The position numbers and the translations under genes are program-made. Of a stretch of DNA of 64,000 nucleotides, positions 1,305 to 53,500 are shown piece by piece. Source of the stretch: Calcarisporiella thermophila CBS 279.70 (taxonomy: Eukaryota; Fungi; Calcarisporiellomycota); the NCBI RefSeq assembly GCF_041956535.1, contig NW_027192192.1, forward strand, positions 1,277,111 through 1,341,110, given 5' to 3'. The stretch's first letter is position 1; each line of letters begins with the position of its first letter. A model generated the notes under the pieces. The model saw only the letters and a program-made list of their open reading frames with translations. It made no database searches and had not been told where the DNA came from.

Positions 1305-3190
1305 ATGCCCGTGGTGGCAACGAAGTTTCAGTCTTTTAATAGGGGCCATTCTTCAAATTCCAATGGAAACATCTCGCCATTCCAGCATCGTATCGCTAGA
1401 ATGTATACCGAAAGAATACCCCCATTAACCAAAGGTTATGCCGTAATACAGCGATCCAAATGTAAACCTGTGAAAATATACTACGAATTATATGGGAAGG
1501 GACCCCGCTGTATAATGATGATTATGGGTAATGTGTACATACTCTAGTTGATAGAATCTTTACTCTATGCTCGCTTTTAACACCTCGGCCCATTTCTTTT
1601 TTAATAGGGTTTGGTCTCCCTTGTCTCGCATGGTACAAATTGGTGAGCATTTAAATCGGTATAGCTTTGTCCTTACCTCACTAATCGTTAATGCATCATT
1701 TAGATCCACTATCTGATGTCCAGCTCCAATGAATTCTCCATTCTTGTGTTCGACCATTGTGGTGTTGGCATGTCAGGTGGGGCGTTGCTTCTAGTTCTAT
1801 GTAAAACTCGGATCCTCATTTATTCTATTAGAGGCGCCAAAGAAACTTCGCTACACGACGAAATCCATGGCAAAAGATGCGCTCGGATTACTCGAGTATG
1901 TCGGTTGGACAAAAAGCGTTCATTTGCTTGGGTGCTCGCTCGGTGGAATGGTGTGCCAGTTTATGGCCGCTTATCGGCCTAGCAATTTCTTGTCCCTTAC
2001 CATTGTCAGTGCCGCGGGAAAAACGAGGTTACCCGTAAGTTTTCCATAGATATGAACATGGCTACTATAGAAATGGGCTTCTCAAACTCTTATTGTTCCC
2101 ATAGCTGAGCGTGGTCATCAGAGGATCCCTTGTGGCGACTTGTAACAGGAGTGAATTGCGAGCCAGCCGAGTGGTGCGACTACTTTTCCCAAAGAGGGAT
2201 CTCCGGCGGCCTTCTCGGCATTCTCAGTACGCGACCAAAGTAGGAAGAAAATTTTGCTGGTGGATACAAATGCCCTCTACTCATCCTTTGTTTATCTACT
2301 GTCCTTACCCCTCTCAGCGTGAAGAGTATCAGAATTTATTTCAAGATGTTTATGAGCTTTCGGGCCCTCACTCCTTAAGAGGCCACATCACTCATCTAGC
2401 TGCCATTCTGTTGCATCGTTTCCCGCACAAGTACGCCAAGCGAATCCGGCGCTCCAGGATTCCCGTTATGGTGATGACTGGAACGCGGGACAGCGTGGTG
2501 TCTGTCAAACGCGTCGACATGCTCAGCCGCCGACTACGTGCGAGGCTGGAGGTGTTCGAGGGGGGAGGCCATTCACTTCATCTGCAATTCACGAGCCTAT
2601 ACGCAAGCTTATTAAAGCAGAATATTGCGCGAGGAGAGGAGAGACTGCCGGCGAGATCGGAAGAAGAGTCTGATCTGATGTTGCCCAAGGGGAGCAGAGA
2701 GAAGGCGGAGCCACTTCAATCGGTGTCTACGATCCTGCCGCCATCAGGCTCGTCCGAAACGGCTATTGAATTGGGGAAATCTGAGAGCGATATTCTCATT
2801 GTTTCAGATGAGGAGTCGGAAAAGGAGAAGGAAGAGGAATGGGAAGAGGAGAAGGAAGAGGAATGGGAAGAGGAGAAGGAGGTGGAGGAGGAGGGGACAG
2901 GGTTAGGGCGAGACCCCGTGTATTCTATCCATGGAGAAGAGCACCTCCTTTCTGGTCATATTGGTGACACTGAGAGTACGGGAAGAGATTCCGCACTTGA
3001 CCTTAATGAAGAAATCGACGAGATGGATAGCAAATTTTTCGGCATGTTGAACGTACCCCCCGCTACAGCAGTACAGGCTCGCCGTGGCACATATGCATTC
3101 GAATCGTACGACGAGGTCCTGGCCAATTTCACTCTGATGAACATGATAAAAAATGAGGCCAATGTCAAGCGGCGCACGCGGTATATTTAG
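1305..3190 (+). CDS. alpha/beta hydrolase fold protein (spliced) with acidic C-terminal tail
   Basis: Spliced frame gives IYYELYGKGP, VFDHCGVGMS, nucleophile elbow GCSLGGM, acid in GTRDSVV and His in GGGHSLH. Canonical introns join the ORF-track fragments. Confidence 0.85.
2824..2880 (+). repeat. 24-bp coding tandem repeat (EKEEEWEE, about 2.4 copies)
   Basis: ggagaaggaagaggaatgggaaga repeated within the hydrolase tail. Confidence 0.85.
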
Positions 3191-19962: not shown

Positions 19963-21335
19963 ATGTCTTCCCAAGAAGACACAAAGACACGCGATGATGT
20001 ACTACAGTTTCTCGACTCTTTAGATCTAAACTCAGATCGACATCCTTCCGAGCTCGAATCGGCAAATACTCCCAATGCAGACACAAACGCGATCCTCAGC
20101 TTCTTGGATGAATTAGACGCGACCACAGAACGCAAACCAGCCCCAGATGCACCATCCGCCCCTTCTGCAACCGAAACGATACCCATCGATGTTGACCCGA
20201 AGCCCGCTGCGAATCCATCACAGCCAGCGGATACCAAGGCAAAGCAAATGGAGAAACAAAGGGAAAAATCGGATTCCAATACCTGGCTTTCATGGGGAAA
20301 CAACATCTGGAGCACCGCCAACACCGCCATAAAAACCACGCAATCTGTTGTTGAGTCATCCGTTAAGAAGAGTCTGTCCGATGGCGGGACTGCTCGTCTC
20401 CTGGAAGAACGAGTGCGATCCATCGTGAATAAGGAATCCATTGGCAAACTCGGTAGGGGGATGATGAGGAAGCACTTGAATCTCATCGACTTGACCATTT
20501 GTTATATTGCCATGTTTAGGGTCCAACTTACAGAAGTTTACAAGTGAGTTTCTGGAAACCATTGCGCCCCCGATCGTGGAGCACGAAGCGATTGAACTAT
20601 GGATCGGAACGGATATGCAATATGAGGGTGTGGAGGAGCTAGTGTATAGGGAGTTTTCGCGTGTGCTGGATCTCTCACTAGAGGACAGCAATATCATTAT
20701 ACGAAAGGGGAACGAAGAGGAGGACTCGCATCAAGGTGAGGGAACAACAGAGCTGCATGCGTGCTCGGGATTGGATGAGGCTCTTCGCCTGGCAGAGGTA
20801 AGGCATGCAGGGCTCTATTTGGCCATAGAAAAATGTTAACCAGAGTTTGGGCGTGCCGTCCTCTTTCAACCGCCTTTAGGCCAATATTGAGAAGCTGAAT
20901 AAAGCTTATACTGATCAGCTGCAAAATCCTCAACGTCCCCTCACCGGAGAGGACCTCCAGAGCCTGGACGAGGTAACAAGACTCCCGATTCGGCATAACC
21001 CTGTTTTCCTGGCGCTTCAGCCGTGTATATCCCCCCCCATCTTCGATGCCTCCATGCCATCGCAGGAGGCGGACGCCTGTCTCTTTTTCTTCGTCCTGGT
21101 CCATGACCCACAGTACAACATCCGGATCAAGAGCTATTCACAGACGATCCCAGCCGAATGGCTGAAATTGTCGTATGAGAGTAATGAGTGGGTGGAGGAA
21201 AGGATGGCGGACTGCGTAAAGCTAGCGTCTCAGATGGCTGCGCAGAGCTATGTGTATCGGCGGGCATTGCAAGGGACAATCCCATCGGCAATCAATGCAG
21301 AAATGGCAGCCGAAAAAGAAGAGAGCCATGAATAA
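19963..21335 (+). CDS. MTC1: maintenance of telomere capping protein 1 family
   Basis: N-terminal DVLQFLDSL, WLSWGNNIWSTA, ETIAPPIVEHE, VHDP...SYSQTIP and EWVEE motifs. Two introns. Confidence 0.8.
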
Positions 21336-21845
21336 ACTTCATATTGCTCCCATCGCAAGTGAGCAGAGACTGGATGGCCTTTTTTTTTTTGTCCAGAAAA
21401 ACCCTAAAAACTTGGAATCGAACAGTTCTTGGTGAAACCAAAAAACAAAAGAGAGTAGAGATGAATCAGCACTTCTTATATATGAGCAACATAAAAAACG
21501 CGCCCATATAATATAAAACAAATATAGTGTAGGAAATGGAACCTCTTCCGATCTACGGTTTGGGTGAGGAGAGAGTGCTGCTACAGAAGATTTTACAGCA
21601 AATGGACAATATGGTTTCCAAGTCAATTGAATGGAGAGTTAGTCGAGACCAGCATTGGTACCTGGCCGTGAAACTTAGGGCTAAATGCTCTGGTCGATCC
21701 TGCTATTGCATTTGGATATTGCTTCTTAGGCCTATACCTCTAATCTCACAACTGTGACTGCAAAGTGATAATTTGAAATTCAGACAACGCATTATAAAAG
21801 CGTAAACACTAAGTTATTTTTCTTTTACTGATTATATTTTCTTTT

Positions 21846-21880
21846 TTTTTCGTTTTCTTTTTTTTTTTTTTTTTTTTTTT
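21846..21880 (+). repeat. poly-T/pyrimidine tract at the putative 5' end of the snoRNA host gene
   Basis: Run of more than 20 T followed by a C/T-rich segment. Confidence 0.85.
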
Positions 21881-21961
21881 CCCTTACCTTCTCTCGTCTT
21901 CCTGCTTTCTGCATATCACATCCCCGTTCTTCACGGTAAGCTTGTCTTTCCAGTTTATTAT

Positions 21962-22043
21962 TATTTATGATGATACTTTGACTTATTGTTTAGGCCTTCG
22001 GGGCCAATGGAGAACAATAAACCTCTAAGAAGTCCTGATATTC
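21962..22043 (+). ncRNA. SNORD61: intronic box C/D snoRNA, U61/SNORD61-like
   Basis: Box C ATGATGA at 21967-21973 and box D CTGA at 22035-22038. The guide CCTCTAAGAAGT is complementary to conserved 18S ACUUCUUAGAGG and matches the remembered 3' end of U61. Confidence 0.85.
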
Positions 22044-22189
22044 ATTGGCTTCTTCTTTTATTCAAAATATCAATGCTGTTATCAAGTGGCTTACCGTTTT
22101 AACTTTTCCATCGTAGATTATCTCCTCAAAGCTGAAGTGCAGTGATAGCAGGTAATATATCTTTTTAATTCGTTGATTATGTCATTCTT

Positions 22190-22272
22190 GGAAATGATTA
22201 GTACTTTATGTCCAATTCAATCTGTCAATCCACGCTTTTTATTTATAAGCGAGAAAAATACGTTATGATCAC
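22190..22272 (+). ncRNA. intronic box C/D-like snoRNA with 18S guide (snoR14/SNORD110-like), degenerate boxes
   Basis: 15-nt guide TCAATCTGTCAATCC (22217-22231) is complementary to 18S GGAUUGACAGAUUGA. C-like ATGATTA at 22194-22200, D-like ATGA at 22265-22268; D' is non-canonical. Confidence 0.65.
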
Positions 22273-22574
22273 CTTTTTTTTTATGTTTATTTCCGTCCCC
22301 TTGTCAAGTCGCATGCTAATCCTTCATTATATTGCTTAGGTTCCTCTATCACTCCATACCTTTATATTCAATCAATAAAGCATATCTTATTTAAAGCAAC
22401 TTTTCTTCAATTCAAACTTATGTGTGGGACAGCCTGTTATTTAAAATATATATGATTCAAACTAAATTAGTGAATCTAGGATTCAACTATTTTATCATTT
22501 CAATTCAACATCAAATGTGACATGTCATTAAGAGGAATATTTTTTTATTGGATTTAATAAAATAGGTCTTCAGT

Positions 22575-23243
22575 TTAGATGTTGGAGGGGTAGAGCATCT
22601 GCAAGAAATAAGGAAGAGAATCAGTGGCCAATTCAAAGCTACAAAAGGCAGAGAGCCACTTACGACGCGGACAGAGGCACCAAATGCGCGGGGAGGAAGA
22701 TTCGACCTGAACTTGGCCTTCACCACGCCGGAGGTACCATGGGTCCGTGTAACACGTCCCCAGATCACGCGGATCTTTGAGCCGTTCACCTCACGCTTCG
22801 CCCGATAGACGTATGCAACGCGCTTGCCAAGGTAGAACTGAGCATCTGTGGGGGTCTTGCAGTTCTCGATCTGGACAAGGGAGGTGTTTGGCGATTGGTT
22901 GCGCTTGGCACGCTTGAAGCCGAGAGCACGGCCCTTAGCATACAGACTATTAAAAAGGACTTCCATTAGTGAATCATGGGGAGTCGAAAGAATGCATGCA
23001 TCGATTGTATTGGATTTTATCTCCATCTCTATTCCACTTATGGACGGAACCAGCATTGCTAATTCCATCGAATTCTTTGGATTTAAGAAAGTGTCCATCA
23101 TTCTCAACCCATCTCCTCGGATAGATTCCCTCCAAACAACATTGATACTCCAAAGCAACCGACCCATCCATCGAATCCATCCATCATCTCCTCATCTTCC
23201 ATCAGCTAACGGAGCAGATTACTCACCGAACAGGTTGAGCCAT
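22575..23243 (-). CDS. RPL33: 60S ribosomal protein eL33 (L35a)
   Basis: MAQPVR|LYAKG...[11 protein letters not shown]...[25 protein letters not shown]...VRV|MLYPSNI. Intron 1 at 23226-22947 and a second short intron. Confidence 0.97.
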
Positions 23244-32300: not shown

Positions 32301-35300
32301 AGCGGACACCGCGAGCACCGCCTCTACGACCATGCGCAGACCGTTTTCCTTGCGGAAGAGTTGCTGCTCCTCCTTATCATATGCATGAGCGAGCGCGCCA
32401 AGGCGATCGGTATGTCTGCGGAGGAGGAGATCCGGCGCGAAATCATTCACGGACTGTGCATTCAACCGATTGCGTACTCGGAGCTGACCCGCCGCATCCC
32501 CGAACGCCTGAATGAGAACCCACGCTTCGATGAGATCCTAACGCAGCTCGCCAACTTCAAACCGCCCGACGGCATGTCCGACCACGGCACCTACGAGCTG
32601 CGTGATCAATACTATGACGAGGTGAACCCCTACTTTGTGCACTACACGCGCAACAACCGCGAGGAGTCGGAGGAGATTCTCAAGAAGCGGCTGAAGAAGA
32701 AGTATCCAGACGCGACCCCGCTTCTTCTCCCCCGGCTCACCAAGATCGACGTGGGCCCCTTTGTAAATATTGGCGAGGCTTTGCACTCTAAAACCATGAC
32801 GCAGATTATTTTTTATGCACTTTGGAATGCCATGGACGACACCAAAATCACAAACGACACCCTCATTGACGAAGCATTGCATTTGTGTGTGATTGCACTT
32901 TTGGACGAGAACAACAAAGCATCGAAACACTGGCATACTAGAACGGGGGGCCAAGAGGGGATGGAGGTGGAGGCTGGCGAGAGCGGCATGGAGGGGTTCG
33001 CACGCCACGCCACCATGGAGAGATTCTCGGTGGTCCAGGACATCGAGCGCCACCACATCAGCCTGCTCACATTGCTATTACGCTGCGCATCGGATGCCAC
33101 CTACAAGGAACTGCATCCGAAGGTGCACTGGATCCTCGACCGACTCGAAGAGGTGGGCCCCGCCCTCGCCAAGGAGCTCATTGGCGATTTCCGCCGAGCG
33201 CTGGCCGCCGCCTCAGCCTCGGCCCACCGCCCCTCCCAGACCGAGCTGACGGAGCAGGAGCGGAAAAAGCAAGAGGCACGCGAACGCCAGGCACGGATTA
33301 TGCAGCAGTTTCACCAGGCGCAGCAGAGCTTCCTTGAGAAGCACGAGGATCTCTACGAGGACGATGAGTACGCAGACGACACCCTCGAGTTGTATTCCGA
33401 GTCCAAGGTAAAGGCCGAAGGGGACGAGCACTCGGAAGAGGAGGTGCTCTGGCTATTCCCATCGGGCACCTGCATTGTATGCAAGGAGGAGGCAAAACCT
33501 GGCGAGCTGTACGGGATGCTTGGGCTCATCCAGCCCTCGAACGTGCTCCGCCAAATGCCCTTGGAGGATGCGGACTTTGTGAGTGAAGCGTTGCACGTGT
33601 CGGAGCACTTGGACGTGGCCGCGGCTCCACAGGGCATAGGAGCTTCGGCAGAGGCCTCTGCCCACACACCCTCGAACCTTTCCGTGGGCTCTATGGCGCC
33701 CCCCACCGGCTCCTCCGCGGGAGGCGTGCCACCAAGCCAAAGCCGCCTGCAGTGCAAGGGCTTCCCGGCCGACTCGCATTGGTCCGGCACCTATTCCTCG
33801 AGCTGTGGGCATTTCATGCACATCCGCTGCTTTGAGACCTACTATGCGTCGTTGGAGCAGCGCCATGGGGCGCAGCCCACCCGCAACCACCCCGAGGACA
33901 TTGAGCGCATGGAGTTCATTTGCCCGCTGTGCAAGTCGCTCGGCAACGTGATTCTGCCCATCGTTTGGCGAGGGGTGCATGAAACCTACCCGGGCGTGTT
34001 GTTCCCGGACACCGAGCTGCGCGAGTGCATCGAGCTTCAGCTTGGGACGCTCATTGACGAGCTGGAGGACGTGGTCTGGCGTGGGGTGTCCACGGGCGAG
34101 ATCGACCCGTGGCCACTGTCGACGGGGCGCACCCTCTTCCGAAACGGCCAGCAGGGTGGGGACGCAGCGAGCGAAACGGCGAGCTCCCCCAGCGAACCGG
34201 AGGAGCTTCTGCCCATTGGGCGGAGGGCTCGCAGCGCGTATCCCGCACGGTTCCGGCAAGCCGTCGCGCAATTCCCGCAGATTCTCCAGGACTTTCTGCG
34301 GCCGTCGGGCAACCTTCTCAACAGCAGCTCTGCCGACCTCTACGACGAGTTCTTCTCGAGCATCCTGGACGACCAGCGCTCCGATCACCCGTCCTCGTTG
34401 CCCTCCCAGACCAACCCCAGTCTGCACCCCTCCGAGCCGACCGCCTTGCTGGTCAACCCCGCCGACACGCAGACCGTGCGTAAAATGTACGTGCGGCTGG
34501 CCGCCGTGCTCTTCGAGCTGCACCCCAAGGCCAAGCAGAATCGCCTGCGCAACGATAGCGGGGCGAAGTCGGCGGAGCTCCTGTGGGATCTGTTCGGCTA
34601 CACCATCTCCTGCAACGAGGCTGCCCAGCGCGGCATGGGGGTCCCCACGGCCGGCGGGGAGGGCGGCTCTGGCACCGTGGTGGACGGGCTCAGCCAGCAG
34701 ATCACCACCCTCCATCGCGTGCTGGCGCAGTCGATCGCCACCTACCTGGGAATGATGGCCCGCAAGGAGCGGCGCGCCCTGTCCCTGAAACGCCTCCTCA
34801 CCCGCCGCCTCCGCCAAATCCTGGTGGAGCGGCCGTGGCCCCGCGACCACACCGACACCTCATCGAGCATGATGTACGGCGAGCTTGCGCCCCTGTTGCT
34901 GGAGGATCCGTTCCAGGTGCTCTCGGAAGTCACCACCAACCCCTTCTCCAACGTGGCCCCGCACCACCTCATTCGCCTCTGCTACGCCGCCGAGGTCGTT
35001 CGCTCGCTGGTCGGGATCGCAGAGTCCGTGATCGCCGGGCACGCGTGGCTCCGGGACGAGCGGACACGGCAGTTCCAGGTGGCGGCGGAGCGGCGTGGGG
35101 CGCGCGAGAATGAGCCCACGGACCGGCTGAGGGAGTTCATCGCATGGCTGCTCCGGCAGTGCGGGCATGGCGAGGAGACCGTGGGCCGCTTCTTCTCCGC
35201 ACCCCTCGGTGCGTATGTGAGGCTTGTGCGCTCCACCACGCTGCCTTTTCTCCGCCGCCTGGTGATCCTGATGCATGCGCGCTTTGGGATCCAGTTTCCG

Positions 35301-50541: not shown

Positions 50542-53500
50542 ATGAGCGACATATCAGACGATGATGCATATAAAATAGTGTCTGATGAAGATGACGACGT
50601 CTATCAGGACGATGAACCTGCAACGAAAAAGGTAAATGGAGGGAAATCTAGATACTCATGTCTAGATCAGATTAGTTCCTTAGTTCATTCTGCTTGAATA
50701 TTCTCACTTATCCTGTCCATGTTCTTTGCGGACGACAGAGGGCCACGGGGAAGAATAAGGTCACCAAAGCCAAAGCCAATGGCGATTCGGAAAACGTAAA
50801 GCCGCGGGTCATCAAGCGCAAACAAGCCAAAAAATCGGAAGATCCCGAACTAAATGCTAATGCAGGCGTTGGCGAGGACGGGAATGCCGAGAGCCCACCG
50901 AAGCCCAAGGCCAAAGCCGCCGCAAAACCCCGCGCAAAGAAAGCCACCGGGCCAAAGGCTGCCGCTGGTAAGAAGAAAACCTCTGCGCTAGAGGATGGGA
51001 ATGCTGGTGCAGAAAGTGAAGAGTCAGATGATTCCGATTTCAAATTTGCGGAAAAGGAAACCGTTCTGGAAAGAAATATTGGTTCTGCAGCCGATGATAA
51101 ACGCACCGTTGAGGAAATCTACCAAAAGAAGACGCCGCTGGAACACATTTTGCTTCGCCCGGACACCTACATTGGATCGGTGGAGCACATTAAGCAAGAA
51201 ATGTGGGTCCTAGATTCGGAAGAGAAACATATGAAAAAACGAGAAATAGAATATGTTCCTGGCTTGTACAAAATCGTAGACGAAATCATTGTTAATGCTG
51301 CTGACAATAAGGTATTAGCTAGACCGCTTGGCCATTTTTCTGACTGCATGTTCTAGTTTAACACACTCCATCGCCTACGCTATCTTTTATAGATTCGTGA
51401 TCCTGGAATGAACAAGATTAAGGTCGATATTGATCGAGAAAAGAACGTAATTAGCGTCTACAATAATGGCAAAGGGATTCCTGTCCAGATCCACAAGGAA
51501 GCGGGGGTCTATGTCCCTGAGTTTATTTTTGGGCACTTGCTCACCTCCTCCAACTATAACGATTCAGAAAAGAAATTAACCGGTGGTCGTAATGGATATG
51601 GTGCCAAACTCGCCAATATTTTCAGTACTGAATTTATCGTTGAAACTGCCGATCTCACGAATGGCAAATCTTTCAAGCAAATCTTCTCCGATAACATGTC
51701 CAAAAAGACAAAACCAGTCGTCAAGGACTACAAGGGAAAGGAGGAGTTTACCAAGATCACTTTTAAGCCAGACCTTGCAAAGTTCGGAATGACTGAGCTG
51801 GACTCGGACTTTGAGTCTCTCATCAAAAAGCGTGTCTATGACCTTGCTGGCACGGTACGTGATGTCAAAGTATTCCTTAATAACGAGCAGATCAAGATCA
51901 AGAACTTCCAAAAATACGTGGAATTCTATCTCCAATCTACCAAGAATGGGTCCGCAGGGGAAGAGAGTACCCAAAGAAAACCAATCCTTTTATACGAGTG
52001 TGACCGCTGGGAAATTGCCCTGTCCGTTTCTGAAGGCCAATTTGAACAGGTAGGCTGGGATCAGTGTGATTTTATCTCCTCTCCGTTCGGCTTATAGAAT
52101 GGGTCAACTGTTTTAATAGGTCAGTTTTGTGAACAGCATATGCACAACCAAAGGGGGCACGCACGTCAATCATATCGCGGACCAGATAGTGGACTATATA
52201 AAGAACAGTGCGAAAATGAAACTTAAGCCATTTCAGATTAAAAGCCAAATGTGGGTTTTCGTCAATTGTCTTATCGAGAATCCATCATTCGATTCACAGA
52301 CCAAAGACACTCTGACCTTGGTTCATCGCAAGTTCGGTTCGACCTGTGTGATCCCGCCTGAAAAACTGAAAAAAGGTAATTGTTCATCAGCTTAATTTTG
52401 TCTTTCCCTTTCCTTTCTTTTAATACTTTATCTTCCATTGACCTTCCTCCAAAAAATTCCTGGACAGTACTAAAATCGGAGCTACTCGAAAATATTGACT
52501 CTATGGCAAAGTTTAAACAAGAACAAGAAAAGAAGAAAACAGACGGTGCCAAGAGATCCAGGTATTCCTCTTAGTTTAGTGCATTTAAAATATATAGAGT
52601 CGCTATAATCGATGATATTATTATTCCCTAAGGATCACGGGTATCCCGAAGCTTGACGACGCCAACAATGCCGGCACTAGGAGGGCCAAAGATTGCACCC
52701 TCATTCTCACTGAAGGAGACTCCGCCAAGGCACTCGCCGTTGCTGGCCTCAGTGAGGTGGGACGAGACGATTTTGGAGTGTTTCCACTTCGTGGAAAGTT
52801 GTTAAACGTGCGCGAAGCTTCCCACACACAAGTCATTAATAATCAAGAGATCAACCATATCAAGAGAATTCTTGGTTTGAAGCATGGGATAAAATACACT
52901 TCAACCGACGAACTCCGCTATGGAAAGTTGATGATCATGACCGATCAGGTCAGCACGAAGTTTCATTCAAACGCTGATGTTTCCATGCGCTAATGGCTTT
53001 TGTATGGTTATTATTTTTGCGCACAGGATCATGATGGTTCTCACATCAAGGGTTTGATCATCAACTTTTTGGACCACTTCTATCCCTCACTTTTGGAGCT
53101 GGACTTCTTGGACGAATTTATCACCCCTATCGTCAGGGTAACAAATTGAGTCGTCTCACTCCCCATCTTTAAATATTTTAGTTAATGCAACGTTTTTATA
53201 AATAGGTTACAAAGGGGAATCAGGATCAAGCATTTTTCACAATGGTTGAATTCGAACAATGGAAAGAGAGTCAACCTGATGGGGGAAAGAGTTGGAAAAT
53301 CAAATACTATAAGGCAATCTTTGATCTATAAATAGAGTGCTCCTTAGGATTTCTTACCTCTTCCATTTCAATTCCCATAGGGTCTCGGAACTAGCACCAA
53401 CAAAGATGCAAAGAATTATTTTTCAAATCTAAATATACATCGAAAAAGGTTTGAGCCGGTCACTCCGACGGATCGCCAAATGATCGATCTTGCCTTCAAC

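Follow-up and report, generated by a model that had tools for sequence, protein, structure and literature searches.

A candidate non-coding host gene with two intronic box C/D snoRNAs in the early-diverging fungus Calcarisporiella thermophila

Mammalian UHG and GAS5 are the classic host genes in which each intron carries one snoRNA. In Neurospora, non-coding UHG-like hosts of the same one-snoRNA-per-intron kind have been verified by RT-PCR, and the same catalogue lists CD44, an intronic snoRNA whose D' guide directs 18S-Um1227 by 15/0 pairing and whose counterparts are HBII-55 and plant snoR14 (PMC2780460). In plants, U61 and snoR14 form a published cluster, "cluster 49" (PMC5122169), and both of the corresponding methylations have been mapped (PMC8053127), Arabidopsis 18S U1384 (the equivalent of U1382 in the fungus described below) being an experimentally mapped Nm assigned to U61.1 and U1235 a mapped Nm assigned to SnoR14.

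Here we compare these systems with a locus of Calcarisporiella thermophila, which lies in a 64,000-nucleotide stretch of the genome (hereafter the window), in the gap between an MTC1-family gene, whose last exon matches PF10310, and RPL33, which is read from the minus strand and has its stop codon at 22575-22577. This gap probably holds a small non-coding gene on the plus strand, transcribed by RNA polymerase II, which would act as host for two box C/D snoRNAs, one in each of its two introns. Four lines of evidence are directly in hand: the anatomy of the locus, the complementarities to rRNA, the homology of both RNAs to known families, and the recurrent linkage of the same two guides in other organisms.

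Anatomy of the candidate host gene

The preliminary description had credited the ORF-free gap between MTC1 and RPL33 with the full anatomy of a gene: a pyrimidine-rich start, two GT-AG introns of about 180-190 nt (roughly twice the local length), a 35-nt middle exon without ATG, a branch point, an AATAAA and, in each intron, a segment complementary to 18S rRNA. Every one of these features was found where it had been placed, and the observation is confirmed at the sequence level. A TATA-like box (TATAAAAG, 21793-21800, plus strand), which may serve as the promoter, is followed by a stretch (21802-21935) that is 81% pyrimidine, and putative exon 1 (21836-21935, plus strand, 5' end tentative) occupies the pyrimidine-rich end of this stretch and closes with the donor G/GTAAGC. 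Putative intron 1 (181 nt, 21936-22116, plus strand) runs from this donor to an acceptor TAG at 22114-22116, with a branch-like TTTTAAC (A at 22102) 14 nt ahead of the acceptor. Putative exon 2 (22117-22151, plus strand) is 35 nt long, and is followed by putative intron 2 (188 nt, 22152-22339, plus strand), in which a branch-like GCTAAT (A at 22319) stands 20 nt ahead of the acceptor TAG at 22337-22339; the donor of this intron, CAG/GTAATA, lacks the usual G at +5 yet retains the full CAG/GTAA match. Putative exon 3 (22340-22400, plus strand, 3' end approximate) contains the AATAAA at 22374-22379. The test for protein-coding potential was a scan for ATG run exon by exon (21802-21935, 22117-22151 and 22340-22400), which found none in any of the three putative exons.

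Elsewhere in the window, introns that plausibly join ORFs measure ~70-85 nt, with donors of the form GTAAGN or GTGAGN, branch sites CTAAC, CTGAT or CTAAT and YAG acceptors; with signals of this type and lengths of 181 and 188 nt, both putative introns are thus local in kind but more than twice the local length. A general intron-like pattern applied to the gap picked out exactly two segments, 21936-22116 and 22152-22339, and two such segments in series were recovered in 0.17% of dinucleotide shuffles of 21880-22400. The 521-nt region has no paralogue in its own genome.

Three further observations concern the exons and the surroundings. The end of exon 2 (22137-22148, AGTGATAG) pairs with the start of exon 3 (22346-22357, CTATCACT) over 8 perfect bp, extending to ~11 bp with one mismatch, and folds across intron 2, MFE and centroid alike, show the pairing, which might draw together the two splice sites flanking snoRNA 2 or else be chance (~1 in 80). 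Between MTC1 and the putative promoter, a GC-richer island (21536-21757, plus strand) holds a 73-aa ATG-initiated ORF after a TATA-like run; it gave no Pfam match, no Rfam match above noise and a fold z-score of -0.2 against shuffles, and could bear on where the host transcript starts. RPL33 itself (22575-23243, minus strand) reads as three exons (23227-23243, 22664-22945 and 22575-22598) separated by introns of 281 and 65 nt, and encodes ~106 aa; the matching NCBI protein, at 138 aa, is longer, which suggests that the public model extends too far. Over exon 2, two further RPL33 paralogues in the genome reach 95% and 93% identity.

The box C/D snoRNAs of the two putative introns

The element in intron 1 (snoRNA 1, 21962-22042, plus strand) is of the U61/SNORD61 type. 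A canonical C box, AUGAUGA (consensus RUGAUGA), lies near its 5' end at 21967-21973, a canonical D box, CUGA, near its 3' end at 22035-22038, and between them is an internal hairpin with a UUCG-type loop. The guide, CCTCTAAGAAGTC (22022-22034), is complementary to the organism's own 18S rRNA at 1378-1390 over 13 nt without a mismatch, abuts the D box, and is identical to the guide of the snoU61 consensus; the hallmark of the family, at least 10 nt of complementarity to the 18S site CUUCUUAGAGG abutting D, is therefore present. The D-box spacing rule is obeyed, in that 18S U1382 is paired with A22030, the fifth nucleotide before D. The combination of guide and D box occurs once in the genome, and the RNA aligns with environmental and plant-like U61 RNAs (alignment A2). 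Among 5000 dinucleotide shuffles of intron 1, 80 gave an antisense match of this length or longer. Plant snoU61 is the top Rfam family for the interval (21.8 bits, E 0.074), at a score below the gathering score of 55 bits (RF01170). We regard the identification of snoRNA 1 as secure, and its predicted target for 2'-O-methylation is U1382 of 18S rRNA, in the organism's own numbering.

The element in intron 2 (snoRNA 2, 22188-22274, plus strand) is less canonical, and its guide, its register and its alignment with relatives place it with the SNORD110/HBII-55/snoR14/Neurospora CD44 type, where HBII-55 is what we take to be SNORD110. Its guide, TCAATCTGTCAATCC (22217-22231, plus strand), lies downstream of a variant C box, AUGAUUA (22194-22200), and is perfectly complementary over 15 nt to the organism's own 18S rRNA at 1231-1245; a match as good arose in 4 of 5000 dinucleotide shuffles of intron 2, and outside the rDNA this is the only exact copy of TCAATCTGTCAATCC in the 28 Mb genome. 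The guide expected of the family, a complement of the 18S segment beginning GGAUUGACAG between C and D', is accordingly found downstream of the C box. In the Rfam SNORD110 consensus the order is C box, 8 nt, AUCUGUCAAUCC, 1 nt and a D' box CUGA; snoRNA 2 has the register of guide, 1 nt and D' position in common with it, as well as the layout overall, and the published Neurospora CD44 sequence, alike in layout too, carries the same guide as snoRNA 2, 1 nt before CUGA. On the basis of the shared guide, register and target we assign the intron 2 element to the SNORD110/CD44 family, and by homology its target is most likely 18S U1234 (Arabidopsis U1235, Neurospora U1227).

The boxes of snoRNA 2 depart from those of its family. 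At the expected position of D' stands CGCU (22233-22236, plus strand), which makes up the 5' side of a short hairpin, CGCUU/AAGCG (22233-22252, plus strand), where the relatives have CUGA or AUGA (alignment A1). The D box is AUGA (22265-22268, plus strand), with A in place of C at position 1; in alignment A1 it falls under the CUGA D boxes of all relatives. The terminal stem is merely 2-3 bp long. Boxes C and D each keep the GA dinucleotide needed for the sheared G-A pairs of a k-turn, and presumably the U at position 6 of the C box could pair with the A at position 1 of the D box, where a k-turn normally has G-C. With variant D' and D boxes and a weak terminal stem, snoRNA 2 could be poorly functional. 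A longer snoRNA 2 of ~135 nt, with a C' box UGAUCA at 22266 and a D box CUAA at 22316, was considered and rejected, since AUGA is what lines up with the D boxes in all relatives and CUAA coincides with the branch site.

Of the checks that had been proposed, comparison with the organism's own rRNA bore out both guides, each being a perfect match (1378-1390 and 1231-1245), and comparison with Rfam went half way: a weak, sub-gathering snoU61 match supports the element in intron 1, and SNORD110 was not matched in intron 2. At gathering thresholds, Rfam returned no match in the whole 64-kb window. With E-values up to 10, the SNORD110 model gave no match on 22150-22345, and the sole C/D match in intron 2 was a partial snoU36a of 12.9 bits over the C-box region; snoRNA 2 thus has no Rfam C/D match that spans both guide and D box, and lies below the gathering score of 64 bits (RF00610). 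Neither snoRNA stood out on MFE folding (z -0.5 and -0.3), which is the expected result for C/D RNAs. Allowing G-U pairs and one mismatch, no convincing second guide was found in snoRNA 1 or snoRNA 2. Alignment A3, a covariance-model seed, was abandoned, since the relatives align inconsistently in their 3' halves.

Other candidate matches in the window and genome were also inspected. Genome-wide matches to RF00610 and RF01170 away from the locus were noise and lacked matching guides, near matches elsewhere in the genome to a SNORD110-type guide with D' (L016-L020) lacked C boxes and were judged chance, and a 15-mer with one mismatch on contig 10 lay in GC-rich surroundings without boxes. Ten other antisense matches of at least 13 nt in the 64-kb window were examined, none with C/D boxes. 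The only other rRNA antisense match of at least 15 nt in the window (1542-1556, minus strand, against 25S 1975-1989) has no C/D box nearby, and is consistent with chance because ~0.6 such matches are expected in 128 kb. A 13-14 nt antisense match to 25S 322-335 (CTCGCCAATATTT) occurs twice, at 32764-32777 (minus strand) and 51609-51621 (plus strand), both copies lying in apparent coding regions without C/D boxes; the repetition is probably a shared protein motif or a coincidence.

The departures of snoRNA 2 from its family are the ground for the strongest alternative to our reading, namely that the host and snoRNA 1 are real, and the intron 2 element is a decaying SNORD110-type relic that either does not assemble into a snoRNP or does not direct methylation. 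It would account for CGCU at the D' position where every relative has CUGA or AUGA, for the AUGA D box, for a 3' half without a second guide, for the weak terminal stem, and for an Rfam C/D match that stays weak, partial and confined to the C-box region even at E-values up to 10. Uniform decay does not predict, however, that the guide should be intact at 15 of 15 positions while three of the four D' positions have changed, and boxes C and D retain the GA needed for both sheared pairs of the terminal k-turn. The AUGAUUA C box is moreover found, letter for letter, in an environmental contig (L099) where it stands alongside canonical D' and D boxes, the majority of yeast snoRNAs operate without a functional D', and no canonical second copy of snoRNA 2 exists in the C. 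thermophila genome, leaving no other gene that could supply a SNORD110-type guide. Weighing these points, we think it doubtful that snoRNA 2 is a relic, and we favour a host gene that delivers two functional snoRNAs.

Linkage of the two guides in other eukaryotes

The two guides recur together well beyond this locus. A scan of metagenome contigs anchored on the U61 guide and D box yielded 87 matches, of which 25 were accompanied on their own strand, no more than 900 nt away, by the SNORD110-type core CTGTCAATCC, whilst its reverse complement occurred in none of the 87; the chance expectation is ~0.15. One of the 25 (L098) was antisense rDNA and was discarded, leaving 24 usable matches. Three layouts were seen. 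In thirteen contigs (L036, L037, L051, L053, L054, L055, L057, L058, L075, L076, L078, L084 and L100) both guides are in a single snoRNA of ~90 nt, with the SNORD110-type guide, CUGUCAAUCC, before D' and the U61-type guide, CCUCUAAGAAGU, before D; several of these double-guide snoRNAs lie directly downstream of GTAAGT donors, and are thus probably intronic. About six contigs have a plant-like tandem of two snoRNAs 80-180 nt apart, and four (L074, L103, L104 and L099) have the two snoRNAs in two adjacent introns, as in C. thermophila. In L088, which falls outside these three counts, the second guide lies 474 nt upstream.

In the four contigs with adjacent introns the order is GTAAGT, a U61-like snoRNA, CTAAC and YAG, then a short divergent exon, then GTAAG, a SNORD110-like snoRNA, CTAAC and YAG. 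Between L074, L103 and L104 the snoRNAs are near-invariant and the splice signals are kept, whilst the middle exon can hardly be aligned, and an internal hairpin in the SNORD110-type snoRNA carries a compensatory change between L074/L103 and L104 (alignment A4). Constant snoRNAs on either side of a diverged exon are the pattern expected of a host whose exons are not its product. The protein-coding neighbours differ, CIAPIN1 in L104 against MTC1 and RPL33 in C. thermophila, which indicates that the conserved entity is the two-snoRNA unit and not a wider synteny. The claim that the gap is a snoRNA host with two intronic snoRNAs is supported by these contigs, in which the guides are again paired in adjacent introns, together with the membership of both RNAs in known families and the exons without ATG. 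As a side observation, the SNORD110-type snoRNAs of L074 (877-880 region), L103 and L104 have a second guide before box D, which we take to be complementary to the conserved 18S 5' region UAAUUCUAGAGCU.

The tandem layout also lends itself to a second alternative, in which both snoRNAs are real and are cut by nucleases from an unspliced dicistronic precursor, in the style of plant and yeast polycistrons, with GT and AG around them incidental. It draws on the plant-like contigs, where both snoRNAs stand 80-180 nt apart, and on the published polycistronic U61-snoR14 cluster of plants (PMC5122169). Two ordered intron-like segments with one snoRNA in each would then have to be an accident seen in just 0.17% of shuffles, and the same splice signals would have to recur by accident around both snoRNAs in four independent environmental contigs in which the sequence between them diverges. 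In addition, 45 of 55 Neurospora C/D snoRNAs are intronic (PMC2780460), and the distances from the snoRNAs to the 3' splice sites fit intronic processing. We therefore hold a dicistronic precursor to be improbable. It is very improbable indeed that the exons are instead the UTR of MTC1 or RPL33 with no separate host gene, as the stop codon of the MTC1-family gene, at 21335, is itself overlapped by an AATAAA and leaves 450 nt to the TATA-like box and 600 nt to the first donor, RPL33 is on the opposite strand and has its own AATAAA (TTTATT on the plus strand) ~25-30 nt past its stop, near 22545-22550 and short of 22400, and the GT and AG signals can be read on the plus strand only.

The U61/SNORD110 pairing looks old, because the two guides are also together in plants and in environmental eukaryotes. 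A bolder reading, which we offer tentatively and think unlikely, is that the U61 and SNORD110 guides are an ancient linked unit, perhaps derived from a single double-guide snoRNA, which met different fates: kept as one RNA in many environmental eukaryotes, split into a tandem in plants, placed in two introns of a host in early-diverging fungi, and separated in animals. On this proposal the SNORD110 member of C. thermophila would have lost D' and would rely on a variant k-turn re-paired between U6 of the C box and A1 of the D box, and it would either methylate U1234 without D' or act only as a chaperone that binds 18S rRNA.

Proposed expression and comparison with described systems

For the two-snoRNA host gene that we favour, we infer transcription, splicing, processing and both methylations as follows. 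A transcript made by RNA polymerase II would start downstream of the TATA-like box at 21793 and end shortly past the AATAAA at 22374, and its spliced product would have no coding function, its role being the delivery of the snoRNAs. Snu13, Nop56/58 and fibrillarin would assemble on each snoRNA inside the pre-RNA; in snoRNA 2 the terminal k-turn would form from the variant C box AUGAUUA and the D box AUGA, with both sheared G-A pairs kept. Splicing would free the lariats, and debranching followed by exonucleolytic trimming that stops at the snoRNP boundaries would give RNAs of ~80 nt. SnoRNA 1 would then guide 2'-O-methylation at 18S U1382, whilst snoRNA 2 would pair over 15 nt with 18S 1231-1245 and most likely guide methylation of U1234. 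From the 3' ends of the two snoRNAs it is 74 and 65 nt to the 3' splice sites, and 60 and 45 nt to the branch adenosines; the distance to the 3' splice site is reported to be important for the processing of intronic snoRNAs (PMC2780460), and the 74/65-nt spacing may be said to resemble that reported.

If this is correct, the known gene content of an early-diverging fungus of a poorly sampled lineage grows by one gene, apparently unannotated, and by two snoRNAs, and the locus predicts two 18S methylations, Um1382 and Um1234. Both methylations are present in human, and we know of no equivalent of either in yeast. The locus also places a U61-type guide among the fungi. Neither the main text of the Neurospora catalogue (PMC2780460) nor that of the fungal snoRNAome survey uses the name U61, and on that ground such a guide may not have been reported from a fungus before. 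The design of the gene, by contrast, is not new, being known from Neurospora and from animals; the preliminary description had called this the most hidden system in the window, which overstates its novelty, as the design has already been published for fungi (PMC2780460). Less familiar is the occurrence of both guides together in plants, in C. thermophila and in many environmental eukaryotes, sometimes in one RNA. Such repeated adjacency offers a concrete case for studying how such guides come to be divided, copied and carried from one intron to another.

The closest described systems in gene design are the UHG-like hosts of Neurospora (clusters I-V, Liu et al. 2009) and the mammalian UHG/GAS5/SNHG genes, which, like the gene proposed here, carry one C/D snoRNA per intron, flank each snoRNA with canonical splice signals, have exons that are short and free of meaningful ORFs, and have the snoRNA rather than the spliced RNA as the conserved product. 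The pyrimidine-rich stretch before the first donor in C. thermophila recalls the 5'TOP starts of the vertebrate hosts. Compared with the Neurospora hosts, that of C. thermophila has two introns only, and its pair of a U61-type and a SNORD110-type snoRNA is not among the five clusters, CD44 being tabled as a single intronic snoRNA; splicing has been verified by RT-PCR for the Neurospora hosts, whereas the C. thermophila introns are so far read from sequence.

In guide content the closest system is the plant U61-snoR14 cluster, which has the same two guides near each other on one strand in the same 5'-to-3' order, directed at the same conserved 18S uridines. Plant clusters are expressed as polycistronic precursors without one intron per snoRNA, unlike the layout in C. 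thermophila, and in plant snoR14 boxes C, D' and D are all canonical and a second guide, for 25S U803, is present, whereas in snoRNA 2 of C. thermophila boxes C and D are variants, D' is missing and we could find no second guide. Human SNORD61 and SNORD110 (RF00270/RF01170 and RF00610) have the same guides in the same registers, the guide lying before D in U61 and before D' in SNORD110, although both C. thermophila snoRNAs fall short of the Rfam gathering scores of these families. The two human snoRNAs are likewise intronic, yet they lie in different protein-coding hosts, which we take to be RBMX for SNORD61 and NOP56 for SNORD110, and are not side by side. The environmental double-guide snoRNAs stand at the other extreme, with both guides in one RNA, whereas in C. 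thermophila each guide has a snoRNA and a putative intron of its own.
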